Assembly (NCBI GenBank): GCA_001179505.1
Contig: CDMY01000231.1
Location: forward strand, 62,001-126,000
Source of the DNA: Vitrella brassicaformis CCMP3155
Taxonomy: Eukaryota; Protista; Chromerida
Reading direction: 5' to 3'
DNA length: 64,000 bases
Made by a program: the position numbers and the translations under genes. Below the pieces are notes generated by a model. The model worked only from the letters and a program-made list of their open reading frames with translations. It did no database searches and was not told the origin of the DNA. This document shows, piece after piece, positions 2,853-42,800 of this stretch (position 1 is its first letter; every line of letters starts with the position of its first letter).

Positions 2853-3046
2853 GATTCCATCAAGGATTCTCGCAAACCGTCTCTGTCCGTCCCTTCAATT
2901 TGCTTCATCTGATTCCATCAATTGGATATCTTGTCTTCTCTCTTTTCGTTTGCTCTCTCGACCGGCCTGTGCTCAAACCTTTCAAGCCTGTTCTCTCTCG
3001 CGTCACGAGCCTTTCAGCTGCATCTACCCTCGTGCTGCAGTCCACC

Positions 3047-4681
3047 ATGACTCGACTCTCGGCTGCCGCGGTGTGCCTCATCTTCCTGGTGTCGGCTGCC
3101 CTGGCCGACGATGCTTCGCGCAACGCGCTCCGCTCCATGCGCGGCAAGAACGCTGCTGCCAATGATCAAGGTGCATAGGAATGAGACCAGATGCCTGCAC
3201 ATTACAGCCCATCACATCACTTGTCTGCCTGTCGTCTCTCTCTCCCTTTTTTTGTGCAGCTGCGGATGATCTTGTGTCCGGCCTCAGGTGGACACACAGC
3301 ATCCCTGAGCTGGACAGCATGCCTGAGGAGCCACCCCAGCATCGCGCCCTGTGGCCCAAGATCAGTGCGCCCAAGATCCCCGCGCCCAAGATCAGCCCGC
3401 CCAAGATCAAAAGCCCCGATCTCGGCAATCTGGGTAAGACAGCAGGCAAGGCTGCTGGGGCGTACTACGGAGGCGCTGCTGGAGCCGCTCTTGGCGGGGC
3501 CGTTGGGTCGAAATTCGGCCCTGGGGGGACGGCGGCAGGGTCGGCTATTGGCACGGCTGTTGGCGCGACAGAGGGAGCAAAGCATGGGGGCAAAGCTGGA
3601 GAAAAGGCCGGAGACTGGGTGGAGGACCGGCTCGGCGGCTCTTTCGGGTTCAGACGTCTGAGTGACGACACGGCCGATGCAGAGGTAGGAGGGATGGGAG
3701 AGAGGCACTGGGCTTGCTTCAGCACTTGGTCGCATTGCACCCCATCTCATTATCTCATTGCTGTCTGTCTGTCTGTCTGTGAGTGCAGGACGCCGCGGAT
3801 GATCTTGTGTCCGGCCTCGAGGACAAGCACGCTGAGCAGCATGAGGAGGAGCCACCCCAGCATCGCGCCCTGTGGCCCAAGATCAGTGCGCCCAAGATCC
3901 CCGCGCCCAAGATCAGCCCGCCCAAGATCAAAAGCCCCGATCTCGGCGATCTGGGTAAGACAGCAGGCAAGGCTGCTGGGGCGTACTACGGAGGCGCTGC
4001 TGGAGCCGCTCTTGGCGGGGCCGTTGGGTCGAAATTCGGCCCTGGGGGGACGGCGGCAGGGTCGGCTATTGGCACGGCTGTTGGCGCGACAGAGGGAGCA
4101 AAGCATGGGGGCAAAGCTGGAGAAAAGGCCGGAGACTGGGCGATGGACCGGCTTGGCGGCTCCTTCGGGTACAGACGTCTGAGTGACGACAAGGCCGATG
4201 CAGAGGTAGGAGGGATGGGAGAGAGGCACTGGGCTTGCTTCAGCAGTTGGTGGCATTGCACCCCATCTCATTGCTGTCTGTCTGTCTGTCTGTCTGTCTG
4301 TGAGTGCAGGACGCCGCGGATGATCTTGTGTCCGGCCTCGAGGACAAGCACGCTGAGCAGCATGAGGAGGAGCCACCCCAGCATCGCGCCCTGTGGCCCA
4401 AGATCAGCGCGCCCAAGATCAGCCCGCCCAAGATCAAAAGCCCCGATCTCGGCAATCTGGGTAAGACAGCAGGCAAGGCTGCTGGGGCGTACTACGGAGG
4501 CGCTGCTGGAGCCGCTCTTGGCGGGGCCGTTGGGTCGAAATTCGGCCCTGGGGGGACGGCGGCAGGGTCGGCTATTGGCACGGCTGTTGGCGCGACAGAG
4601 GGCGCAAAGCATGGGGGCCGATTGGGAGAAAACGCCGGAAACTGGGCGGAGGACCGGCTTGGCGGCTCCTTCGGGTACTAG
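3047..4681 (+). CDS. Secreted glycine-zipper peptide polyprotein A (signal peptide + 3 repeats); exons 3047-3170, 3260-3684, 3789-4205, 4310-4681
   Basis: Signal peptide MTRLSAAAVCLIFLVSAALA. GT-AG introns keep the frame (phases 1,0,0). Each of exons 2-4 encodes an acidic spacer, HRAL, (PKIxx)n, a GxxxG zipper and GGSFG(F/Y), followed by RRLSDD in exons 2-3 and by the stop in exon 4. Confidence 0.9.
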
Positions 4682-4861
4682 ACTGGTAGATGAGTGGTAG
4701 ATGCTTGCATGGGGAGGGATGGGCACGCGGTTTCGGCTCATAGGAGATGAGGTAGACTACGGGGGTTCATGATTGTGGCTGCCCATGAATGCTCTGTCTG
4801 TCTTTCCCATTCCCGTGTATGTGTACACCCCATTCATGTATGTGCGTGTATGTACGTGTAG

Positions 4862-5365
4862 ATAGGCAGGTAAGTAGGTAGATCGGTTCGGCGCTGCCGT
4901 GCCAGTAGCGTAGGGTTCACAGATAGAATGGGCAATGGGGTCGGCTGACTGGATGCTATTCATGATGACACGAGGCTGGGGCTTCGTGAATTTCATGATC
5001 ACATGGATATATAAGTGTACACTAGGCAGATCAGCTGATAGGATAGATGTAACATTGTGTATATGCCTGTTGACGTCACCGTTTTCCTTTTCACTGTCTG
5101 TCTTGTCCCATCGTAACGTGTGTGTATGTGCTGCACGGGGCTGGGCTTCGTGAATTGCGTGATTACATGTATTTGCACACTACGCATTCCCGTTGCCCTC
5201 CATGTGTGTGTCCATGTGTCGACAGGTAGGTAGGTGTAGATAGCTGTGCCAGTAGAGTACGGTAAGACAGATACAAGGGGAATGGGCTCGACTGGCTGTC
5301 ATCTTGATGATGCACGAGGCTGGGGCTTCGTGGATTGCATGATTACACGCATGTGTACCCATACA
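4862..5365. repeat. ~170-bp degenerate repeat units in the 3' flank of polyprotein A
   Basis: GTAGGTAGATCGGTTCGGCGCTGCCGTGCCAGTAG...GATGACACGAGGCTGGGGCTTCGTG recurs at ~4862, ~5222, ~10452 and ~10722, with a degenerate inverted copy at ~805-895. Confidence 0.7.
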
Positions 5366-5780
5366 TTCTCGTTCGGTCTGGTGAGCCTACGCGTAGTGCG
5401 CCCTCTGTGTTTCCTGTCGTATGGTTGGTCAGTTGTGGGTCTTCCACATATCCACAGGTGTGGCTGTCTGTCTGTCTCCTGTCTGGCTGTCTCCTGTCTG
5501 GCTGGCTGCCTGTAGTTTTCATGTGTCTGTCGTTAATCACTTTCATACGCGTGTATGTGTGGTGTGTCGTTTGGCCAAGTGGGCTGTGTGTGCCTTGTTT
5601 GTAAGTATGTTTGCATGAAGCACGCCTTGTTGATATGCGAATTATGACGGGATGCATGGATGGAGGGATGAGACGCAATCAAGGACACACATTCACTACA
5701 CATTAAGTCGATTGAATCACAGTTTGAGTCCCCAGCACCAAGTACATCCATCAAACGAGGTCCACCTGTCAGTCAGCTGG

Positions 5781-7007
5781 CTAGTGGTCGACCATCGCAT
5801 CCGCCCCATGAGCCCCTCCCCCACTCACAGCAGTAGCAGCAGCACCACCGCCACCACCACCAGAGCCATTCAACAGACGATCAGACATGACTGCACACAC
5901 AGAGAGAGAGACACACATGAATCATGCGTGCGTGTGTCGTGCCCTTCTCCCTCTCTGGCTGACATGACGGCCTCGGTTCCTTCTTGTCGTCTCCTGGTAT
6001 GAGTGTGGTGATGGGCACCCACTCGGGCGGCTCCTGGTCGCCACACCGCCATGATATCACCTGCAGCGAAGAGTGTATCATGCAGCATTCACCACCAATG
6101 GGGTTTTCCTTTCCGTCCTCCTCCCCCCCTTACTGTTCCGTCATCTGCCGCTGCGGTGAGGACGGTGCCGGTGACGTTGAAGCACACACGCCATATCTGC
6201 ACACATACAGCCCACAGTTGTCACGAAGCATGCACTGAATCACACAACGCAATGGGTGTGATCTTAGGAGGCGGGCTCACCGGTCCCGGCGATATTTCGA
6301 TCTTCTGCAGGATCTGGAGCAGCCACTTGTCGGACGCGCCGGCCACACCCGACTCTGCGCAGACACAGACACTCAGCGAGAGATGCCTGTCTGTCGCGTA
6401 CACAACACACACAAGCTTGTTGCTTCCGTGCATACCAGCCGATGGTGGCAAGATGGCCTCCGCCTGAGCAAGGGGGCGAGCCGTCTGTCGATGGACGTAT
6501 GTCTGCCTGGCTGTGTGCCAGCCCTATTACTGACCGGTGCGTTGGCCGATGTGTCCTGTTGTGGCTGCTGCTTCCACTGCCATATGTGCACCAGGGGCTC
6601 GTCCCCACAGGTGGCCAGCAGATCATACGGCCTGCATAGGTTGGGTGCCCACGCCACATCCTTCAGAGGGGCACTGCTCGCCTGCACACACACACACACA
6701 CCAAGACAGGCCGATCCCATCCCGGCCGCCAGCCAACCTTTTGCTCTGCAAGCCTCGACCAGCCCCGTCCACTCCTGAAATGGACCACAGCAGCCAGCCA
6801 TGCGGTGATCCAATCCATCGCTGTGTGTGCCGCCCGCCATGCCATAGATCGATCTCTCACTCACTTGCCCCAGACGTCGAGTATGCCGTCGTTGCCCACC
6901 ACGGCCAGTATCTGGTCCTCACTGTCGAAGTTCCACGCCAGCGCCGTGCAGCCTCGGGGGCAGTTGCTACGCTTGTGACTTGTGAAACAATCCTCCTGAC
7001 CGATTGA
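5781..7007 (-). pseudogene. 5'-truncated duplicate of Seh1 (last exons only)
   Basis: Near-identical to 11420-12700 (VAWAPNLCRPYDLLATCGDE; IWRVCFNVTGTVLTAAADDGT). Similarity ends at ~7017 inside an intron, so the N-terminal WD40 exons are absent. Confidence 0.85.
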
Positions 7008-7174
7008 TTGAACACACACCTCATCACACTCGAACCCTGGAACCCCGCAAACCCTTGCCTGATTTGAATAAGCCAGGAGAGAACGCTCCCGCGAAGACGG
7101 AAGATCTTTCCACCTCTTTCATCTGTCCCTTCTTTCCCTCCCTCTCTACCTGCCCACAGTTCGCTATCCCCTCC

Positions 7175-7200
7175 CCCCGGCCTGAGGTCATCTCAGATCT
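7175..7200 (+). promoter_or_regulatory. Second copy of the 26-bp upstream element
   Basis: Identical to 2827-2852; ends 17 nt before the ATG at 7218. Confidence 0.5.
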
Positions 7201-7217
7201 CTCATCTCGGTCAGGTC

Positions 7218-7718
7218 ATGAAGATTGTGATGTGCCTTGTTGGTGCCCTTCTGCTGGCTGCTGCTGTCTGCGGTGCCATGACCGATGCAACCGCGCCATC
7301 TGACGCCGCCACCAATGTGATGGTGGGGAACGTTCAACAGGAGTGGAAGGAGCGCCTGCTTCCTTCCCTGTGTGTGTTTGCAGGTGCTTCGCGGATCCGT
7401 GAGCGCCTCCGCGGACGACGTCGATATGGACAATGGTGAGCCCCTCAACGGCTTATTCTCCTCATGTTCTGGGTGCATGTGTGTGCGTCCTGCCTTCCTG
7501 CAGCTCACGACGCTGAGGCTGAGGCGGAGAGGCGTGAGCTCCAGATGTACTGTTCCCCCGGCATGTGTTTCCCCCCGCCCTGCTGCTTGTCATCTCTTCC
7601 ATCTGTCAGTCGCTACTGTCCCGACTCCATGTGCAACCGCCCCCGTCATCCCTGCTGCGTTCGCCAGTGGCCAGGATCGCAGGCGGCATGGTCACAAGCA
7701 CGGCGACGACCATATTAA
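7218..7718 (+). CDS. Secreted cysteine-rich peptide precursor; exons 7218-7322, 7384-7435, 7504-7718
   Basis: Signal MKIVMCLVGALLLAAAVCGA, acidic pro-region (..ADDVDMDNAHDAEAEAE), RRELQ, then YCSPGMCFPPPCC and YCPDSMCNRPRHPCC. Splice phases 0 and 1 keep the frame. Confidence 0.85.
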
Positions 7719-8908
7719 TTAGAGGTGAATGGGGAGGAGAGAGCTGCGTGCAGAGTGCATTGCTCGATGTATCTGGCGAATGCACATGCAGGTGAGTGAG
7801 TGGGCGACTGACTGCACCGCCGACTGCTGATGGATGGATGATTACATGGACAACTTGTAGCCTAGTCCTCTGATCTGACTATCCTGCTACACTACGCTGG
7901 TGGGGGATGTATGCAATCATTCCACGCATGGTTTGCTTTTTTCCGTTGCTCGTGCCATTCATTCGTGTGTCTGTCTGTATCGGTACCACGTAATCATTCA
8001 CATGGTCGGTGCTGGAATGCGCGTGCCAACTCTGATTGGATGTGTACAATCGGTGCACACGGTCGGCGATGGCTGGCTGGTCCCTTGCGGGTTCGTGTGC
8101 TGTGTTGTTCCCACCACAAACAACCCCTCGTTTGTCTGTCTGCCTCAGGGTGTCTCTGTGCCAGGCTTCCTGTTTCATTTTGATGGTTGTATTTGTCCTA
8201 GCTAGTGTATTTGTCGGTCCTAGTACGTCACTTTGCCTGCCTGCCTGGCGCAGTTGTTCTTTCGAAAACATGTGTATAACACGAACAGACGCTGTGTCGT
8301 GTGCTCGGTGCGTAAGGAAAATGAAATGATCGTACATGGCGAAGATTCACGTTTGCATCCATACACATATCATATGCACAGTCTGCATGATGTCTGAAAT
8401 TGGCGCTGTCATACCAGCGGGGTACGTCACACGAGGGGTGCAGAGGTGGAGGTGAATGACTACACCCCTCCAAATCAAGTTTGCAATGGGATTGTGTATA
8501 ACAGCCTGCTCGTGCTCGCGTTTGCACGCGCCGCAGCAGCGGGGCCATCGTTCTTCGGCAGCTCGGGCGTTAGGGCGCCGTTGAACAAACGTCCTGTGAT
8601 GATCGACGAGGAGGCGACGCAAAGCTTGGTTTGATGTGATAGAGAGCAGGGAGAGCGCCTCTTTTCCTTTCTTTAAGTTTTCGAATTGGAATTCAAGAAC
8701 GGACGGGCGAGAGAGAGAGAGAGAGATGTAGTTTTTCGTCTCCTTCTGTCTCGCTCTCTCTCTGTCGCCCCGCCCACCCGCCTCCCTATTCTCCGTCGCT
8801 TCCCTCATCCATCTTTTCCTCTTCTCTCTTGCCGACACTGATCCGCCTTGCCTCGAGCCTCAGACTTGCTATCGACCTGCTCTCTCTCTGAAGCCTTTCA
8901 GCTGCATC

Positions 8909-10281
8909 ATGACTCGCCTCTCGGCTGCCGTGGTGTGCCTCATCTTCCTGGTGTCGGCTGCCCTGGCCGACGATGCTTCGCGCAACGGGCTCCGCTCCAT
9001 GCGCGGCAAGAACGGTGCTGCCAGTGATCAAGGTACATAGGAATGAGACCAGATGCCTGCACATTACAGCCCATCACATCACTTGTCTGCCTGTCGTCTC
9101 TCTCTCCCTTTTTTTGTGCAGCTGCGGATGATCTTGTGTACGGCCTCAGGTGGACACACAGCATCCCCGAGCTGGACAGCATGCCTGAGGAGCCACCCCA
9201 GCATCGCGCCCTGTGGCCCAAGATCAGTGCACCCAAGATCAGCCCGCCCAAGATCAAAAGCCCCGATCTCGGCAATCTGGGTAAGGCAGCAGGCACGGCT
9301 GCTGGGGGGGCTGTTGGGACCAAGTATGGAGGCCCTGTTGGAGGCGCAGCTGGCGCGGCCGCTGGGGGCCGATTGGGAGAAAAGGCCGGAAACTGGGCGG
9401 AGGAGCGGCTTGGCGGCTCCTTTGGGTACAGACGTCTGAGTGACGACACGGCCGATGCAGAGGTAGGAGGGATGGGAGAGAGGCACTGGGCTTGCTTCAG
9501 CAGTTGTTCGCATCGCACCCCATCTCATTGCTTGCTGTCTGTCTGTCTGTCTGTGAGTGCAGGAAGCCGCGGATGATCTTGTGTCCGGCCTCGAGGACAA
9601 GGACGCTGAGGAGCATGAGGAGGAGCCACCCCAGCATCGCGCTCTGTGGCCCAAGATCAGTGCGCCCAAGATCCCCGCGCCCAAGATCCCCAGCCCCGAT
9701 CTCGGCAATCTGGGTAAGGCAGCAGGCACGGCTGCTGGGGGGGCTGTTGGGACCAAGTATGGAGGCCCTGTTGGAGGCGCAGCTGGCGCGGCCGCTGGGG
9801 GCCGATTGGGAGAAAAGGCCGGAAACTGGGCGGAGGAGCGGCTTGGCGGCTCCTTTGGGTACAGACGTCTGAGTGACGACACGGCCGATGCAGAGGTAGG
9901 AGGGATGGGAGAGAGGCACTGGGCTTGCTTCAGCAGTTGTTCGCATCGCACCCCATCTCATTGCTTGCTGTCTGTCTGTCTGTCTGTCTGTGAGTGCAGG
10001 AAGCCGCGGATGATCTTGTGTCCGGCCTCGAGGACAAGGACGCTGAGGAGCATGAGGAGGAGCCACCCCAGCATCGCGCCCTGCAGTTCAGCCTGCCCAA
10101 GATCCCCAGCCCCGATCTCGGCAATCTGGGTAAGGCAGCAGGCACGGCTGCTGGGGGGGCTGTTGGGACCAAGTATGGAGGCCCTGTTGGAGGCGCAGCT
10201 GGCGCGGCCGCTGGGGGCCGATTGGGAGAAAAGGCCGGAAACTGGGCGGAGGAGCGGCTTGGCGGCTCCTTCGGGTACTAG
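8909..10281 (+). CDS. Secreted glycine-zipper peptide polyprotein B (paralog of A, shorter zipper); exons 8909-9032, 9122-9462, 9563-9895, 10000-10281
   Basis: Same signal exon (124 nt) and intron phases as A. Repeats HRAL(W/Q)-(PKIxx)n-DLGNLGKAAGTAAGGAVGTKYGGPVGGAAGAAAGGRLGEKAGNWAEERLGGSFGY-RRLSDD. Confidence 0.9.
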
Positions 10282-10451
10282 ACTGGTAGATGAATTGCGG
10301 ACGCTTCCATGGTGTTGTGGGGCCGGGAGGGAGGAGTGAGAGGCGTCCTCTTGGGTCATGGGCCATGTCATGTATGCCCTGTCTGTCTTTTCCCATTCCC
10401 GTGTATGTATGTACCCCACTTATGTGTGTGCGTGTATGTGCGTGTAGACAG

Positions 10452-10870
10452 ACAGGTAAGCAGGTAGATCGGTTCGGCGCTGCCGTGCCATTAGCGCACG
10501 GTACACAGATGCAATGGGCAATGGGGTCGGCTGACTGGATGCTATCATGATGACACGAGGCTGGGGCTTCGTGAATTTCATGGTTACATGGATATACAAG
10601 TGTACACTGGGCAGATCGCTTCGGCCGTGAACATGCACAGTGGTGTGTCACCCTTTTGCCTCGGGCCGTGTGTCTTTTCGCGCTCTCATGTATGAATGTG
10701 TGTTTGTGTGCACGTGTAGATAGGCAGGCAGGTCGGTACGAAGGGTAGTCGCTGCCGTGCCAGTAGCGTACGGTACACAGATACAATGCACTGGATGGAT
10801 GGTGTGACGATGATGCACGAGGCTGGGGCTTCGTGGATTGCGTGCTCACATACGTGTGTTTGTACACTAC
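10452..10870. repeat. ~170-bp degenerate repeat units in the 3' flank of polyprotein B
   Basis: Same unit as 4862-5365, two copies. Confidence 0.7.
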
Positions 10871-11419
10871 GCGTTGCTCAAATGATTTGAGTTGGTTATT
10901 TGTGGGAACCATAGCGTGGGCGGCTGTGGTTTTCATCTGACTGACTGTCGATACGTGTACGTGAATGTGTGATGTGCCGTGTGGCCGAGTGGGCTGTGTG
11001 AGTGTCTGTGGGCCGAGTGCACGTACAACACTGATGGGATAAATGGATGGATGAGATTACGGTCGAGTGGAGTTCATGCCGCACTTTTCGCCTTCTTCGC
11101 TATTCGTCGGACTGAGTTACGTATTTGTGGGCTTCACAGACAGAGGTGCCTCCGTTTTCATTTGTCTGTCTCACTCATCTTCATACGCCTGCATGTGTGT
11201 GGTGAGTCGTGTGGCCAAGTGGGCTGTATGTGCCTTGTTTGTAAGTATGTTTGCATGAAGCACGCCCTGTGGATATGCAGACAGGATGGGGGGATGCATG
11301 GATGGGTGAGACACAATCAATGGGACACATTCACTTCACATTGAAGTCGATTGGATCACGCTGTGAGTCACCAGCACCAAGTACCTCCATCAAATGAGGT
11401 CCATCTGTCAGTCAGCTGG

Positions 11420-13685
11420 CTAGTGGTCGACCATCGCATCCGCCCCATGAGCCCCTCCCCCACTCACAGCAGCAGCAGCAGCAGCACCACCGCCACCGCC
11501 AGTGCCATTTAACAGACGATCAGACATGACTGCACACACACACAGAGAGAGAAGAGAGACACATGAACCGCGCGTGCGTGTGTCGTGCCCCCCTCTCTCT
11601 TTGGCTGACATGACGGCCTTGGTTCCTTCTCGTCATCTCCTGGTATGAGTGTGGTGATTGGCACCCACTCGGGCGGCTCCTGGTCGCCACACCGCCATGA
11701 TATCACCTGCAGAGAAGAATGCATCATGCAACATTCACCAATGGGTTTTCCTTCCCGTCCTCCTCCCCCCCTTACTGTTCCGTCATCTGCCGCTGCGGTG
11801 AGGACGGTGCCGGTGACGTTGAAGCACACACGCCATATCTGCACACATACAGCCCACAGTTGTCACGAAGCATGCACTGAATCACACAACGCAATGGGTG
11901 TGATCTTAGGCGGGTTCACCGGTCCCGGCGATATTTCGATCTTCTGCAGGATCTGGAGCAGCCACTTGTCGGACGCGCCGGCCACACCCGACTCTGCACA
12001 GACAGACACTCAACGAGAGATGCCTGCCTGTCGCGTACACACGCACACAAGCTTGTTGCTTCCGTGCATACCAGCCGATGGTGGCAAGATGGCCTCCGCC
12101 TGAGCAAAGGGGCGAGCATGAGATGCCCTTCTGTCGATGGGCGTATGTCTGCCTGGCTGTGTGCCTGCCCTATTACTGACCGGTGCGTTGGCCGATGTGT
12201 CTTGTTGTGGCTGCTGCTTCCACTGCCATATGTGCACCAGGGGCTCGTCCCCACAGGTGGCCAGCAGATCATACGGCCTGCATAGGCTGGGTGCCCACGC
12301 CACATCCTTCAGAGGGGCACTGCTCGCCTGCACACACACACACACACACACACACAGAGCACAACACAATGTAACGCACACGCACATCCCATCAGCCCAG
12401 CCATCGACCGGTCAGCCAACCTTTTGCTCTGCAAGCCTCGACCAGCCCCGCCCACTCCTGTAATGAACCACAGCAGCCAGCCATGCGGCGATCCAATCCA
12501 TCGCTGTGTGTGCCGCCCGCCATGCCATAGATCGATCCCCTACTCACTTGCCCCAGACGTCGAGTATGCCGTCGTTGCCCACCACGGCCAGTATCTGGTC
12601 CTCACTGTCGAAGTTCCACGCCAGCGCCGTGCAGCCTCGGGGGCAGTTGCTTCGCTTGTGACTTGTGAAGCAATCCTCCTGACCGATTGATTGAACACAC
12701 AGCTGCAATGTGTGGGTGGTGATGGCCGCCATTGTGTGCGTACCATTGGCCACGCCCCGAGCGAGAGGAGGTCTTGCGCCTCGTAGATGCGGACGCTGCC
12801 GTCGGCACTGCACGTGGCCTGATGCGTCGCGTGGGTGGTTGAGCATTCATCCATCACACACACACGTGCGCGCCTCGGCTCTCTGTTTGTTGGCTGACCA
12901 GTCTGAGTCCATGCTTCTTGGGCGAGAACTGGATGTCGCGTACGGGCATCTGACACGGATATTTCGACGCAGGCCACAATGTGACCGTAGGGCGATGACC
13001 GTGTGTGCGTTGGATCGATTCACTTGTGCGTCTGAGAGTTTCGCTCTCCTCTTCCATATGTTTGTCAGATCTGCCGGCGCGCCGACATTCTCAGCGTGGC
13101 CCTTTGGTCTGTATCTCTCCGACCAGATGCAGACAGTCCTGTCCTCCGAGCAAGTCGCAAGAACCTATCCGCCAACGAGTACCTCTGTAGGGCCCACACT
13201 TGCGTGTCTTCTCTTGACTCGACTCACCTGGCCGAACTCGGGATGCGCCCAGTCGACCCGCCAGATGGGAGCATCGTGAGCCTGACCACACACAGACGAT
13301 CTAACCCGTGCGTGCCGTGCCTCGAGACCACCCGTCGTACGCTCTCGATGTTGGCTGACTCATTCCACTCGCCGCTTCTCTGGTCGTAATCAAACACAAT
13401 GACCTTCTGAGATGACGAACACACCGCCAGCCGGTCACCTGCATGAGCGACGGAGGGAGAAGAGTCAAGTCATTCAGTGAATGAATGAATGAACGAGTGA
13501 ACGTTGTAGTGTATTAGCGGTTGGTGTGACTGTGCTTACCGTAGTAGTTGTATGTGATGTCGTGGATGTAGTCTGCTGACGTCGCCAGCCTCACTGTGAT
13601 GCTCTTGTCCAACCGCTGATAAATCAACACAAACGACAAGCAACGGACGAACGCTGTGATTGATTCATCTTCCTTTGCTGACCAT
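11420..13685 (-). CDS. SEH1: Nucleoporin / GATOR2 WD40 protein Seh1, full-length and multi-exon
   Basis: N-terminal ..SADYIHDITYNYYG|DRLAVCSSSQKV.., VRDIQFSPKKHGLRL, ATCSADGSVRIYEA, VAWAPSLCRPYDLLAT and WRVCFNVTGTVLTAAADDGT match Seh1/Sec13 WD40 blades. The YDLLAT and IHD..Y motifs favour Seh1. The first exon appears to supply only the ATG (13683-13685). Confidence 0.85.
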
Positions 13686-14323
13686 CCTGACGCGCGGCTG
13701 TATGGCGCTGCTGATCTTCTCACTTTTGTTTGTTTGTCGAATTTTAGCTCGCACGCCGATCGGGCGCTAAGGGCTTCTTTCCATCTTCCCTTCGGTGCAG
13801 TGCGGCTCAGCCTTACCTCTGCGGGCTTATGCGTGCGGATCATTCGAAAAAAAACACCTCAATTGCATCCACATTGGATGCAGTACGATCAATGCATGCA
13901 ACTGGATGTCCCCTCCTGCCCACCGCACGTCCTGCCTCATCGAAAACCCGTCGAAGCCAGCCGAAAAGGGGAATTCGCCTTTGGCTTGCCTTGTTTGCTG
14001 TATCTGCAAACGCCAAAGCAACCCAAGTGCAGCGTAGAGATAGAGAGGAAGAGGGATCGGGAACGGGAAAACGCGAGAGCAGCACAACGAGCCATGCAGC
14101 GCAAAACAGCGCACGTGATACGTCGGGAGGCCGTGCATCTTTCAGATGCTGGCCCACGCATCCCCACTGATGGCTTCCTTCCTTCGGTGCCCACACGCAA
14201 ACAAACAGCCACACACGGTGACTTACTAAGACATCCCCACCGGCCGCACACACATACGGCATCAATGGCAACTTCATTGGTTTGACGCCACTCATTCGAA
14301 TCACATCCCTCCCCTTCCACCAC

Positions 14324-15391: not shown

Positions 15392-17460
15392 ATGAGGTCT
15401 TTCCCTGCTCTCTGCCTTGCCCTCGCGGCAACACAGCTGTTTGCGGGTGAGCACCACACTCACTCAACCACATTTGCCTGCCTGCTGATGTCTGTGTGTT
15501 GCTTGTGTGCAGCTGCGCAGGACAGTGAACCCAAAGTCCTGGAGCCCAAGGAGCAGGTGTTCCTTGTGGGCTCCATCAACGGCGAGAAACACCTGCACAA
15601 TGCGGCTCCCATCACCGTCGACCCCTTCCCCCTCCATCCCCCCGAGCCGCCCCGCACAGTCACCATCCTCTTCCAGCCAGACCCCGAGCACGCCACCAAA
15701 GAGCTCGAGGACATCCAAAGCGTCCAGTTCACCGTCAGGAATGAGAAAGGAAGAGCAGTCTACAATCGGACGACGTCCAGTCCACCGTTCTCCCTCTTTG
15801 CCCACGAGAAGGGGACATTTCAGGGTGCCTCGCTCGGCACCAAGACTCCCAGCACGCAGCTGAGGCGGAGCCTGCAGAAGGACGGCAACCATCACTCTTT
15901 CCTGCTGCAGGGGCGCCACACCCTTGAGGCGGCGGTGCTGCGGAAAGGAGACAAAGACCCCAAGGTCTTCACCGTCGATCTGAAGACGACGAACCACAGT
16001 GAGCCAGAGATGCAGACAGACCTACCAGCCTGCCACCCACCACTCATTCATGGATGGCTCTCTGTCCGTTGCGTGCAGGTAGCTCGTTGCTGACCCATCC
16101 CGGGATAAGTGGGATAGAACTCGAGAAGGAGACATCCGACGAGTGGTTCGGCTCTCTCAAGGAAGCGGCCACCAAGGCGGGCATCGCCTTCGGGTCCGCC
16201 ATCTGCCAGACGCCATTCGACCTGCAGGGCACACCGAGATGCCGATATGGCGGCGAGGGGGCGTACCAAGCCATTGTGAGAGAGGAGCTGGCTGTCATAT
16301 CGCCCGAGAGGGAGTGCAAGTGGTGGTTTACCCGGACGAGTGCGGACTTGGATGAAATCGACTTCACTGGCTGCGACGACATCTTTGACCTAGCCATCGC
16401 CAACAAGCAGCAGGCGCGCTTCCACACGCTCCTGTGGCACAGCGACGCCTTCTACGGCAACATCGAGGAGTGGCTTCACGCCATGAAGGCCGTCGACAAG
16501 AGAGCCCAGCTGATCGGCCACATTGAGAAAATGGTCGAGAGGTATCGGACGCCCAAGTACTCCAACATCATCGCATGGGACGTTGTCAACGAGGGTATGG
16601 CACATACGCACAACTTAGGTGTCTTGACGTCTGTTTGTCTGTGTCATGTGATCTGTGTGTGCAGCGATTGATGACGCGCAGGACGAAGCCGAGGTCAGGA
16701 GCGGCGGCTACAAGCTGCGTGACAGCATGTGGCATCCCGACCTCCCCGAGTATATCGACCTCGCCTTTGTTTACGCCCACAAGGCCGGACAGGCCGCCGA
16801 CGCCAAGCACAACTCCACCACGATGCCGCCCATGAAGCTCTTCTACAACGACTACTCGTGCGAGTCCACTGAAGGCTACAGCGGCACCAAATCGGACGCC
16901 GTCTACAACCTCTTGGCGGGCATGAAGAGACGTGGGGTGCCTGTCGCAGGGGTCGGCTTCCAGTCGCACGTCAACGGCGAGTACAGCTACTATGAGGGCG
17001 TGCGGAAGAACATGCGGCGTCTGGGCGAGTTGGGGCTGGAGGTGCAGTTCACCGAGCTGGATGTGGCCTGCGGCAAATGGGGGGTGGGTGCGGGGGACGA
17101 CCCCGGCTACACGCCCTGCAAGCAATCCGAATGGACACCGGAAAGAGAGCTGCAACAGGCGAGAGGGACCAGAGACAAAGCACAGGCGAAGACAGAGTCC
17201 ATGCGACCTCTCTCCATTTGTGCCTCTAGGCGGAGATATACCGGCAGTTTATGCGTGTATGTCTGGAAGAGCCCAACTGCACCGGCTTCATCACATGGGG
17301 CTTTGTGGACAAGTCATCGTGGCTCAACCGGGGCATGTATTCCCCTGACTGGCCGCTGCTCTTTGACTCGTCATACAAACCCAAGCAGAGCTACCTCGCA
17401 CTCAGAGAGGAGCTGAGGAACCACACGATAGCCGCGGAGAAGATGGGGCGCCGACAGTGA
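15392..17460 (+). CDS. Secreted GH10 endo-beta-1,4-xylanase with an N-terminal accessory domain
   Basis: Signal MRSFPALCLALAATQLFA; GH10 motifs HTLLWH, WDVVNE (acid/base Glu), KLFYNDY, GVGFQSH, FTELDV (nucleophile Glu), TWGFVDKSSW and PLLFD. Confidence 0.9.
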
Positions 17461-18021
17461 CGCCGGCCAGCGTCGTGCGTAGTGTTTGCGTCGCGTCAAG
17501 TGGTGCTGTGCTCTCTGACGGGCGACTTAGGCAGTGAAGTATTTTGTGGTGTTTTGTGTTTTGTGTGGCGGAGGCAGATATGAGACAAGACACCGAATGT
17601 CGGTGTCATTCCATCCACTGACTGTCGAACAAGTGGTTTTGAGCGAACTGGGGTCTCCTCGATTGCTGATTGGGCGGGGTGATGTGTGTGTGAGAGATCG
17701 AAGGTGTGCATGCGCCATGGATGAGACATCATCGCATTCACGATCGTTCAACTGACAGGTCGTCCGTTCATGTAATTAATGCGAACAAGCCGATCGGATC
17801 GCTGGATGGATGTGTGTCCGCCTTGCCTGCCTACCTGTGAGCATGACTACAGCTCTCACTTGACTGTCAAAGACCGCATTGATTGACAAATACTACAAAG
17901 AACGACAAAGGAAAGAACACATGCAGCGAACGAATGCACTGCAAACACATCTCCATCACCAAACAGAGGACAGCTCAGCTCAGCTCAGCTCAGCTTGGCT
18001 GCTGCTCATGTGTGCGTTCGT

Positions 18022-18885
18022 CTAGGAGCCGCCCTGCAGCACACGCTTCGACACCTTCCTGCACGTATCCCTCACACTCTGCACACACACGAGAAGACAG
18101 GCAGCCGGGAGAATGAAGACACCTCTCTGCACACACACATGTGTGGCTTCCTTCCTCCCGTACCTCCTTGAAGTAGCCATAGAACTCGTTCTGTGAGCAC
18201 CGGCCATAGCCACCCCTCCCCTCCCCGCCACACGTCGGCCAATACAGGCCCTCGGACCGGTCGATGCATGTGTTCAGCTGCACCAAGTAACACACCAAAG
18301 GCCCTAGGAAAGCAGCAGCCTGCGGCGCAAAATTCGGGCGGCATTGCTCCCGAACGTAGCCACAAGCAGTCGAAGCGATGCCCTTGGCGGCACTGTTGCT
18401 GAACTGGGTGCAGGGGTTGGAAGAGCTGCGGCAAAAGGGTGAGGGGTCACAGGACTGGAAGCACCGATAGAGACTCTGACCGGACAGCAGGTTAGAAACG
18501 CACTGCGAGCAGCACTTTCGTTGCTGCAGGGCGCGCCCGCTGCCCTCCTCAGCCTCAGCGTCCACCACCCCCACACAGCCGTCCTCGTCGCAGTCGACGA
18601 AGGCCTCGGCGGCCATGTCGGTGTCGTTTGCTGGTGAGGGGGGAAAGATGGGCTGATGCGCTGTGACATTCGGGGGCGGGACCGGCTGTTGCGATGGGAT
18701 GGGAGGGCTCGCCTCACCTACAGAGAAGCACACATGCGCAATAACATAGATAGATAGTCCACCCTCTTCATCCGGTTGTTACCGCTCGTGGATGTCGATT
18801 CATTCAGGGGTCGCCCGTGCGGCTGAGAAAGCACCGCTGCGATCAGACAGAGGAAGATAAACGGACACAGCGCACGAGTCACCAT
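18022..18885 (-). CDS. Secreted cysteine-rich protein precursor; exons 18885-18783, 18717-18164, 18078-18022
   Basis: Signal MVTRALCPFIFLCLIAAVLSQ, then RPLNE, a Pro/acid-rich pro-region, GRALQQ and a 14-Cys mature region ending KRVLQGGS*. Splice phases 1 and 0 are consistent. Confidence 0.8.
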
Positions 18886-39886: not shown

Positions 39887-42800
39887 TCACGCACCAACAA
39901 CTGCCGCACCCTGCCCGGCACCACCACCTGAACCTGAGACATACACAGACAGGCATGCATACATCGACCATGTCCAGTTACCATACCCACACCGATCTGA
40001 ATCACCTGTGCCATGGCTATCGTCTCCATCGTCATCTTCATCCTCTTCAGGGTCCTCGTCGTCGAAAATGATGGCAGCGATGGGTCCCAGCACCCGGCGC
40101 GCCCTGGCGGTGGTCAGGGGGAAGCGCCGCTTGAAGGGCGCATCCCCGCCCACACCAGCGACGGCCCTCTCAGAAGTGCACACCTCGATACAAACTGCAG
40201 TCAAACAAGGCCAATCAGGATCAACCGTCTCATTGCTGTGTCCGTCGGTCCGTCCGCCTATGTGTGCGCACCATATTCATCGTCATAGACTGACAGGCTG
40301 ATCCACGCCATGAAGTCGTCGGTGTAGGACGTGAGCACCAGCACCCGCTCCTGGTAGCCCTCCGGCTCCACACCTTCATAATCATCGTCACCCTCTTCGT
40401 CGCCCTCGCTATCCTCTTCGCTATCCTCTTGGCTCCCACTGTCGTCCGACTCTTGGTCGGACTCCTCGCCCATCGCGTCTGGGTGGCGCATGGGACGGTC
40501 GACGATCGGCGCGGGCTGGGGTCGCCCTTCATCTTGGTCAATATCGAGGCCAAGGACGACCTCCGGGGGTAGCTCTGCCTCGAGGCTCTCACGGAAGGTA
40601 TCCACCTCTTCATCGATGGCGTCTGCCCGCCCGTGTGTGTATGGATGGGGGCGGCTGGGGAAGGGTGGAGGGGGAGCCGGATGGTCTGAGTCGAGGCCAA
40701 GGACAACTTCTGGTGGAAGGGCCGCCTCGAGGCTCTCGCGGAAGGCGTCAGCATTATCATCCTCGACGGGCGTACTGACTACGTCTTGGTGGAGGGGCGT
40801 GGCGGGCCTCGGCAGGATCGCTCGGCCCATCCGCTGCATGCCTTGGCCCTCCTCCAAGCCGGGAGCGAGTGCGATTCGATCGCGCAGCAACGCTGTACGA
40901 CACATGTAGGAACAATACACACACACAAGTAGTGTGTGGACCCATTCAGAAGTGTCGCTCGCTTGCTGCCGCTTACCGATGTCATTCGACAGAATGTCCT
41001 CGGCCGCCCTGCTGTCGGCGATCTGTGCGGTGATGCTCTGAATCCGATGGTCAATGTAGTCCCTCTGCGCCCGCAGGTCGCTGAGCTCCGTCAGCATCGC
41101 CGGCAGCAGCTGCTCGATGCGACCCAGACGAGTGCGCTTGTCCTCCAACTCGTGCTGCATCCTCGCGATGAGCGTGTGGCTGGTACTCATCTCGATGTTG
41201 CAGTGGCGCACTGGTGCGTCCAGCCCTCCTTCTGAGTCGTCATCGGAGCTGTGATCGGCTGCAGGTGGGTTGGGATCGTCGCCCATGTGGCTGCTGTCGG
41301 CCAGCTGCAAGCTCCTCTCCCCGCCACCGGCACACGCCCTCGACTGGTCCTGGAAATCCTGAACACACACACACACACAACACAGGTAGGTGATGAGATG
41401 GGTGTGGCGTAGTCGCTGTGTGGCCACTCCTGCCGCGACTCGCTCACCCACCCAGCCGCGCACCAGTATGAGCATTTTGTTGATGATGAGTTTGATGAGG
41501 CCGAGGAGGACCTTCCTGGCCTCCACGTTGGGGCTGTCGAAGGGCACCTCGTTCTTGCCCACCCAGCCCTCCCCTTTGTTCTTGAGAGCGTCCACCGCCC
41601 ATGCCTCGACCTCCTTGCGGCTGCTCTCCTCGTCCGCTGCAGCAGTCGTGTTGCCCGTCGCCCGCATGAACATGTCCAGGCTGTCTCCACTCAGGCAGTG
41701 GATGGCACCGCGGAGGTGGGCATCGACGATGCGGTTCCAGTTCTGCTCGGCCCGCTCTCGCGCCTCCCTGATGCGCACCCCCATGAAAGACGTAGCGGCC
41801 TGGATGGCCACGTCCATCTCGCAGTGTTGGTCGGTGATATGGTCCGCTGCCTCCTGACAGATGATCTTGATGAGCTCGCTGTCCTCCTGCTCGACCATGA
41901 TGCGGTCCATCAGCTGCCGGAGGTCCTCAGTGTACTGCCGCCCTTCCTCACTGGCCGCCTGCTCCTTCTGACTCGTCTTGGTCTCCTTGCCCTCACCATC
42001 GCGACCCCTGCCGCCTGCAGACGACGACGCGCCACTGTCGCTGCCGCTTTTGCTGCTATCGTTGAGTTTGTTGTGGTAGTTGGCAATGAACCTTTTGACG
42101 TGGCCGTGGAGCTGAATCTGCTGGTTCTGCATCCGCTCGGTGCGCAGACGGTCGTTGAGTGCCTGAGGGTGGAAGCGGCGCATGGAGGCCTCCACTCTAA
42201 TGCACTGCCGGATCCGCCGTGCATCTTCAGCGTCGTCCTCAGATTCGCTGACGGCATTACCCTCCAGGGGACGGAACTGGAAGCCGCGGCTGTCATCGTC
42301 GGCACTGTCGCTCTCCGCCGCTTCATGCGCCTCGTCGTTGTTGTCGTCATGAGGCAAAAGAGGGTGATCCACTTGGCGACAGGAGGGACCATTGTCCGGC
42401 AGTGCACCATCAGTACCAGTGCCGACACTCGACCCACTGCCCCCAGAGCTGCCTGTTGCAACTTGATGGGCGTCGAGATCGGGTGGTAGGGGCGGGTGGA
42501 TGGCGGGAGAGACGGTAGGGGACACACGAGAGGACCTCGGCCTGTCGTCAGACGGCTCGCCACGACCCTCACGCTGACCCACGCCCCTCTCAGGATGGCC
42601 GCCCGAGGGTGAGCGAGGAGGGTGGAGCTGCGATGGACGCCCTGTGGCAGGGATGGCGATGTCCTCGGTGGACGTCCCCTGCGCCGGCTTGCTCTTGCCC
42701 TCACCACCCATGGGGGCCTTGCCGTTGCCTCGGGTGGACGTGCACCGCGCGATGATGCCCACTGCAGCAGCCCTGTCGCTTCGCTGCCCTCGATGCCATC

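Follow-up and report, generated by a model that had tools for sequence, protein, structure and literature searches.

A transcribed Vitrella brassicaformis gene for a putative secreted cysteine-rich prepropeptide, assigned by sequence to a five-member Vitrella-only family

The window, that is the whole 64-kb stretch of DNA analysed here, comprised positions 62001-126000 of contig C231 of the Vitrella brassicaformis assembly (72.7 Mb, 1064 contigs). Its DNA is eukaryotic, with ~58% G+C and short introns. Chromerids are the closest photosynthetic free-living relatives of the apicomplexan parasites, and Vitrella is a coral-reef alga. The element under study is a plus-strand gene of three exons at window positions 7218-7718, called the Cys gene below. 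This gene is real, transcribed and spliced as modelled. Its product is read as a secreted 123-residue prepropeptide that would be cut at an RRELQ junction, releasing a cationic eight-Cys peptide, likely of a defence or antimicrobial type; a probability of roughly 0.55 was assigned to this reading. By sequence similarity the gene is placed as the dispersed fifth member of a Vitrella-only family, the other four members of which stand in tandem on contig C392.

The coding part of exon 3 runs from 7504 to 7715 and is followed by the stop codon; exons 1 and 2 and the two GT-AG introns (61 and 68 nucleotides, nt) are listed in Table 1. Exon 3 was used as the query in a word search of 5.8 billion proteins, and a single protein (P0001) was returned, 100% identical over the query. 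P0001 comprises 123 residues and its only sources are UniRef (A0A7S1KGW9) and MMETSP (Transcript_54103), in both cases from V. brassicaformis. In a computed comparison the spliced three-exon model equalled P0001 at every residue. Because P0001 derives from an independent transcriptome, this identity confirmed the frame, both splice junctions and the strand by RNA evidence. A search for contigs encoding P0001 returned none. An earlier reading of the window from its letters alone (the sequence-only reading) had described a signal, an acidic pro-piece and a Cys-rich end, and had named transcripts that splice differently and lose the Cys exon frame as one outcome that would speak against it. The MMETSP product matched the model exactly, every element that had been described was located in the sequence where it had been placed, and the full layout is carried by the transcript.

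The N-terminus of the Cys protein has, by its sequence, the typical n-h-c organisation of a signal peptide. Residues 1-61 carry a net charge of -8. The part after Leu65 comprises 58 residues, of which 8 are Cys and 10 are Pro (17% Pro), with a net charge of +6 and an isoelectric point (pI) of 9.14. The full Cys pattern is C-x4-C-x4-CC-x10-C-x4-C-x6-CC. Both modules, YCSPGMCFPPPCC and YCPDSMCNRPRHPCC, share the form Y-C-x3-M-C-...-P-CC, and their DNA is identical at 30 of 42 aligned positions. The first six Cys match the C-C-CC-C-C order of the inhibitor cystine knot (knottin; disulfides 1-4, 2-5 and 3-6), but the internal duplication of the module argues for two four-Cys units.

The chance expectation of this pattern was assessed in 100 first-order Markov (dinucleotide-frequency) simulations of the 64-kb window. 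The tandem pair C-x4-C-x(4,6)-CC occurred in none of the 100 simulated windows, and the single module C-x4-C-x(4-8)-CC occurred about once per 64 kb. Genome-wide, the strict form Y-C-x3-M-C-x(4-6)-CC was found only at the two sites in the Cys gene and in four TG-rich low-complexity stretches. Richness in Cys alone is common in this TG-rich genome: a further 18 frames of 60 residues in the window contain at least 7 Cys and 2 CC pairs. Other single matches to C-x4-C-x(4-8)-CC in the window were noted at 40980 (plus strand, CHSTECPRPPCC) and 34050 (plus strand, CTGVRCAPDDAGCC); both belong to different frames or genes.

The spacer that contains the Cys gene (7019-8904) was used as a DNA query. 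The start of the gene (7196-7275) matched several places on C392 and also C543 and C908, and a 120-nt piece ~0.8 kb further down (8008-8128) likewise matched C392. Four related genes, A to D, were read at these places, in tandem on the minus strand of C392. The leader exons of all four were 75-90% identical in DNA to window positions 7196-7329. Expectation (E) values for the leader in the whole genome were 3e-12 to 1e-8 for three of the C392 first exons, and the fourth was found by local BLASTN. Paralogue A (L017:5773-6341, minus strand; start 6341) reads ...GGERRELQ, then RSCPQYLCGWLGPVVPCC, then a Pro-rich tail of ~45 residues, and its three exons have the phases of the window gene. In paralogue B (start L017:8346; P0005), ...GGKRRVLQ leads into RYCPQYLCGWLGGVIPCC, after which come a Pro-rich linker and an additional 14-Cys domain; the exon plan and phases are again as in the window gene. 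Paralogue C (L020:2739-3570, minus strand; start 3570) reads ...AERRELS, then two C-x(7-11)-C-x2-C-x(4-7)-CCC units; read unspliced, these are followed by ~20 Gly-Pro pentapeptide repeats of GPGEx type. It has three exons with the same phase-1 entry into the last exon as the window gene. Paralogue D (L020:1325; P0006) has only two exons and reads ...SLRRLQ, then another Cys head, then a C-terminal domain that is common to B and D. Exon 1 ends after ..ATN[VA]M in both the window gene and paralogue A. In the window gene, A and B, exon 2 ends in a split Gly/Ala codon and exon 3 opens with CTG or CTC in the same phase.

The window gene has two copies of the C-x4-C-x(4-8)-P-CC module, A and B have one apiece, and C and D have none. 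A profile of junction plus module found exactly three loci in the genome (E 1e-25 to 6e-18). A fourth, weak match, on C300, falls within a multi-pass membrane protein and was discarded. The window protein is 41% identical to B over 82 residues and 46% identical to A over 39 residues. The window gene differs from the C392 genes in lying on another contig and in being the only member with a tandem-duplicated module; it ends in a Trp/Arg tail, whereas A ends in a Pro-rich tail, B and D in the 14-Cys domain and C in Gly-Pro repeats.

All four C392 genes have NCBI proteins from strain CCMP3155, unnamed or uncharacterized. P0005 and P0006 agree with the models of B and D that were read by hand. P0007 (paralogue A) agrees over exons 2 and 3 but starts at an internal Met, so that the first 20 residues of the signal exon are missing. 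P0008 (paralogue C) is spliced inside the last exon, and its repeat tail is read in a different frame, as GLAS-type repeats (Pfam PF01744); the unspliced GPGEx reading, unlike P0008, keeps the second Cys unit. P0007 and P0008 look imperfect as public models. Near-identical leaders were also observed on two other contigs, C543 (L019, 29500-35500; minus strand, from ~3200) and C908 (L018, 22000-28000; plus strand, from ~2861), with 82-88% DNA identity to the window leader over 42-55 nt. After D-L-R-A-L-G the C543 gene apparently runs into a Cys/His-rich end (DCDCWC..., CPCMC..., CDCSC..., CTCTC). These two leaders indicate that the leader is common to a wider set of secreted precursors; a protein search with the 35-residue leader was too weak to size that set.

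The window gene and its paralogues were compared by BLASTN. The leader exon was matched in all four genes, and the stretch covering the end of intron 2 and the junction (7499-7544) was 79% identical to paralogue A. No match was found in the ~170 nt that encode the mature part. Beyond the stop codon, 7730-7765 is 86% identical to the sequence directly 3' of the paralogue C stop, 8008-8127 (~120 nt) is 78% identical to the 3' flank of A, and 8037-8145 is 80-88% identical to C. On the 5' side, 7196-7217, just before the ATG, aligns with the 5' flank of C. The family keeps its leader, its junction and, in part, its untranslated regions (UTRs), and its Cys-rich ends have diverged or been swapped. 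Such a contrast, with recognisable UTRs and mature DNA that cannot be aligned, is typical of fast-evolving secreted peptide families.

The junction, which ends an acidic spacer in all five genes, was examined in an alignment of them (A4). R10, L12 and C16 were invariant in five of five, the position after Leu was occupied by Q or S, and the first Cys stood four residues past Leu; an Arg-Arg pair is present in every gene. Such conservation of R-x-L at a fixed distance from the first Cys would be expected of a processing site. In Apicomplexa, the Plasmodium export element (PEXEL) is RxLxE/Q/D, recognised by plasmepsin V, and the Toxoplasma export element (TEXEL) is RRLxx, recognised by ASP5 (PMC4764566, PMC4608785, PMC8540915). 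The Vitrella junction resembles these in having a family-invariant R-x-L core downstream of a signal peptide, in a close free-living relative of Apicomplexa that has many pepsin-family proteases. RRLSD and RALQQ in neighbouring precursors fit the strict PEXEL and TEXEL motifs. The junction of the Cys gene differs in that the motif lies ~40 residues after the predicted signal cleavage and that there is no host cell into which to export. In six-frame searches of the genome, the pepsin-type aspartyl protease domain (PF00026) was found in 17 stretches at ~10-12 loci, and the P domain of proprotein convertases (PF01483) was not found. Many pepsin loci and no P domain lean weakly towards an aspartyl route. 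In the literature searched, none of the papers states whether a plasmepsin V/ASP5 (clade-D) orthologue exists in Vitrella.

A more far-reaching proposal, which was thought doubtful, is that a Vitrella homologue of plasmepsin V/ASP5 cuts the R-x-L junction, that its natural substrates are the five family genes together with the neighbouring glycine-zipper and Cys-rich precursors, and that the 58-residue peptide is a new disulfide-rich antimicrobial scaffold. If this were true, the PEXEL/TEXEL protease would originally have served to mature secreted defence peptides, and malaria parasites and Toxoplasma would later have turned it to the export of effectors into host cells. Lineage-specific precursors that bear R-x-L would be simple non-parasite substrates for asking whether the export-motif protease pathway predates parasitism.

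Known families and relatives outside Vitrella were sought by several routes. No Pfam family was matched by exon 1, exon 3 or P0001 up to E 10, or by the end exons of the four C392 paralogues. A PDB sequence search gave only chance matches (E 0.4-0.5) and no granulin chain up to E 10. An exhaustive HMMER scan of 1.84 billion representative proteins, run with exon 3 only, yielded no outside relative; besides the protein itself it returned three matches (P0002-P0004), long repetitive proteins whose scores were summed from 6-10 repeated matches of 18-26 residues, and these were judged to be chance matches inflated by repeats. The word search of 5.8 billion proteins likewise gave no relative outside Vitrella. 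Homology to conotoxin-superfamily signals was not detected in the word search or in the HMMER scan on exon 3, and Rfam gave no match on 6900-9000. A protein search of the Vitrella genome found no second copy of exon 3; its weak matches were on C494 (E 0.11) and C212 (E 1.4). No paper on chromerid Cys-rich peptides was found in the literature searched, and the Vitrella-only family is not described there. The sequence-only reading had compared the precursor with venom peptides by analogy and had claimed no homology, a caution that proved right in the Pfam, PDB and HMMER searches. It had also called the peptide novel. This holds in so far as no outside relatives were found, but the gene is not a one-off, being the fifth member of a Vitrella family. 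Overall the sequence-only reading is partly supported: its layout and splicing are borne out, and a bioactive or toxin-like product is still conjecture.

In the preferred explanation, the signal peptide would take the precursor into the endoplasmic reticulum, where the acidic pro-piece (about -8) would mask the basic end. An endoprotease of the secretory pathway would then cut RRELQ, either after Leu, as plasmepsin V and ASP5 do, or after Arg-Arg. The peptide so freed would have ~58 residues (+6, pI ~9.1, 10 Pro) and a Trp/Arg-rich tail, and its eight Cys, arranged as a duplicated C-x4-C-x(4,6)-CC, would pair into four disulfides. Its role would be extracellular and of a defence or antimicrobial type, among neighbours that encode other cationic secreted-peptide precursors. 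Many defence-peptide precursors pair an acidic pro-piece with a basic Cys-rich end.

Several points weigh against this explanation. Secretion, cleavage, disulfide pairing and activity are all predictions from sequence. The junction itself, read as RELQM, fails the strict PEXEL motif (its fifth residue is Met, not E/Q/D) and the TEXEL motif (RRE, not RRL). Similarity of the protein to its paralogues is modest (pairwise E 0.001-0.003) and lies mostly in the prepro part. A single-sequence AlphaFold2 model of P0001 had a mean predicted local distance difference test (pLDDT) score of 51 and a predicted template modelling (pTM) score of 0.21, and so shows no confident compact fold. The AlphaFold2 model of P0005 (pLDDT 44.5) was too poor for a comparison of folds, and an ESM Atlas model (pLDDT 0.46) gave structural rows that were all below a template modelling (TM) score of 0.4 on that poor model, with no feature match. 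As no orthologue was found outside Vitrella, purifying selection on the Cys gene is not measurable.

The Pro-rich tails and linkers of A, B and D and the Gly-Pro repeats of C in its unspliced reading suggest wall or matrix proteins, and they also form the basis of the chief rival. Here the product would be a structural extracellular protein of the wall, sporangium wall or matrix, in which Cys modules act as knots that cross-link molecules and Pro-rich segments act as rods, with the window gene as a short member that lacks the rod. This was regarded as possible, though less probable. In its favour are the ~45 Pro-rich residues of A, the Pro-rich linker of B and D, the ~20 GPGEx-type repeats of C and the 17% Pro of the window mature part. 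Rods and repeats are, however, absent from the window gene, whose mature part is strongly basic and just 58 residues long. With much Arg/Gln and little Ser, the Pro-rich tail of A is nearer to Pro/Arg antimicrobial peptides than to the Ser-Pro motifs of extensins. Mature DNA that has diverged past recognition while the UTRs have not would also be unusual for structural proteins. Because the window product is small and cationic and has no rod or repeat, a free peptide was ranked above a structural protein for this gene, but not by much.

It is unlikely that the Cys gene is a young orphan transcript with no selected function, a copy of the C392 family that dispersed recently and is decaying but still transcribed. 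Its single copy and lack of a detected orthologue would fit, as would its position beside a duplication breakpoint and the absence of the long C-terminal domain of B and D; P0001 also has only a transcriptome and UniRef record and no genome-derived NCBI source, unlike the paralogues. Decay is nevertheless hard to reconcile with a frame that is intact over three exons with canonical splice sites, with eight Cys all kept in a regular duplicated pattern, with a preserved junction motif and spacing to the first Cys, and with a transcript in an independent data set. A divergent granulin/epithelin-type module was considered very improbable. UniProt automatically names P0001 "Granulins domain-containing protein", and C-P-D-x-x-C...CC has a loose likeness to the N-terminal granulin spacing C-x5-6-C-x5-CC. 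The name could not be reproduced: PF00396 (cut-off 20.9 bits) had no match on exon 3 or P0001 at E up to 10, and in a six-frame search of the genome its sole match was sub-threshold and elsewhere, so that the Cys locus was not touched. Granulins have the pattern C-x5-6-C-x5-CC-x8-CC-x6-CC-x5-CC-x4-C-x5-6-C and a fold of stacked beta-hairpins, with 12 Cys and four CC pairs against 8 Cys and two CC pairs here, and the spacings differ. Scarcely any credence was given to a non-secreted or plastid-directed metal-binding peptide of metallothionein type. High Cys content is compatible with it, and chromerid plastid proteins also start with a signal peptide. The C-x-C and C-x-x-C clusters of metallothioneins are nevertheless absent, and the conserved junction argues for proteolytic maturation. 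The strongly acidic region after the signal argues against a transit peptide, since these are basic and contain few acidic residues.

The free-peptide reading can be set beside known peptide families in terms of organisation. Like the conotoxin-type superfamilies, the Vitrella family has a signal/pro/mature layout in which signal and pro-region are conserved and the mature part has strongly diverged, and a compact Cys framework preceded by a putative basic processing site; the likeness is one of organisation only. The C-C-CC pattern in conotoxins is framework XVI. Unlike conotoxins, the Cys protein has no sequence relationship to them, comes from a free-living photosynthetic alveolate, and carries two modules and a tail. 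It resembles granulin/epithelin modules (PF00396) in being small, putatively secreted and rich in Cys with CC pairs, and mammalian alpha-defensins in that the basic charge of a Cys-rich mature part is balanced by an acidic pro-piece. In paralogue A a Cys module is combined with a Pro/Arg-rich stretch, as in the penaeidins, which are chimeras of Pro/Arg and Cys domains, and the Trp/Arg-rich tail of the window gene recalls cationic defence peptides. Alpha-defensins and penaeidins differ in showing no homology and in having another Cys framework. The organisation thus resembles that of venom and defence-peptide gene families by analogy only, with no membership by sequence. A conserved leader with a divergent Cys-rich end is well known in animals, plants and fungi, and the result is therefore best seen as a solid annotation and as a lead, not as a surprise. 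The duplicated four-Cys module, without a relative in searches of billions of proteins, is a candidate for a new small disulfide scaffold.

Table 1. Features of the Cys gene and its flanks (window positions)
Feature	Position	Strand	Remarks
Short 5' element, putative 5' UTR or core promoter piece	7175-7200	+	26 nt, 100% identical to 2827-2852
Exon 1: ATG, signal-like peptide, start of pro-region	7218-7322	+	P0001 residues 1-35
Signal-like N-terminus MKIVMCLVGALLLAAAVCGA, ~residues 1-20	7218-7277	+	Hydrophobic; cleavage point judged by eye
Intron 1	7323-7383	+	61 nt, GT...AG; removal needed to yield P0001
Exon 2: acidic pro-region VLRGSVSASADDVDMDN	7384-7435	+	Placed and phased like exon 2 in A and B
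Intron 2	7436-7503	+	68 nt, GT...AG
Start of exon 3: end of acidic pro-region and junction	7504-7544	+	RRELQ at 7530-7544
Cys module 1, YCSPGMCFPPPCC, Y-C-x4-C-x4-CC	7548-7586	+	Aligns with the sole module of paralogues A and B
Linker LSSLPSVSR	7587-7613	+	Translation
Cys module 2, YCPDSMCNRPRHPCC, Y-C-x4-C-x6-CC	7614-7658	+	Internal duplicate of module 1
Trp/Arg-rich C-terminal tail, 19 residues, ends RRRPY, plus stop (7716-7718)	7659-7718	+	Translation
Probable 3' UTR with paralogue-conserved pieces	7730-8145	+	Pieces 7730-7765 and 8008-8145; extent inferred

A ~4-kb segment is present in two copies, at 3043-7018 and 8905-12701. The copies are ~90-99% identical along most of the segment, and their similarity ends sharply at 7018/12701. 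The segment contains a glycine-zipper polyprotein gene on the plus strand and the 3' exons of a WD-repeat-like gene on the minus strand. A unique spacer of 1.9 kb separates the copies and contains the Cys gene, 200 nt past the end of copy 1. The placement of the Cys gene between two glycine-zipper genes, proposed earlier from the letters, therefore holds, the interval being a spacer between the copies of a segmental duplication. Only copy 2 runs on into further upstream exons of the WD-repeat-like gene, which indicates that the copy-1 version of that gene, directly upstream of the Cys gene, is truncated at its 5' end.

Within the short 5' element, the 22-mer at 7179-7200 has exactly one other occurrence in the 72.7-Mb genome, at 2831-2852. 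The copy at 7179-7200 precedes the start codon of the Cys gene by 18 nt, and that at 2831-2852 precedes the start codon of glycine-zipper gene A by 195 nt. The shared 22-mer may be a common piece of 5' UTR or promoter, or a relic of rearrangement. The neighbouring glycine-zipper polyprotein genes are those that carry the RRLSD junctions.

The minus-strand exons (5700-7018; 11344-13700) resemble by eye a WD-repeat protein of Sec13/Seh1 type; Pfam searches on the short minus-strand exons upstream did not confirm the WD-repeat reading. At 17990-18733 (minus strand) lies a long Cys-rich open reading frame (ORF) with an acidic DAEAEEGSG, then GRALQQ, then KCC. It repeats the acidic, R-x-L-Q and Cys arrangement in an otherwise unrelated protein. 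ORFs with motifs like those of glycoside hydrolases (e.g. WDVVNEG), possibly of GH10 type, were observed at 16054-17400 (plus strand), where they adjoin the secreted-precursor genes.

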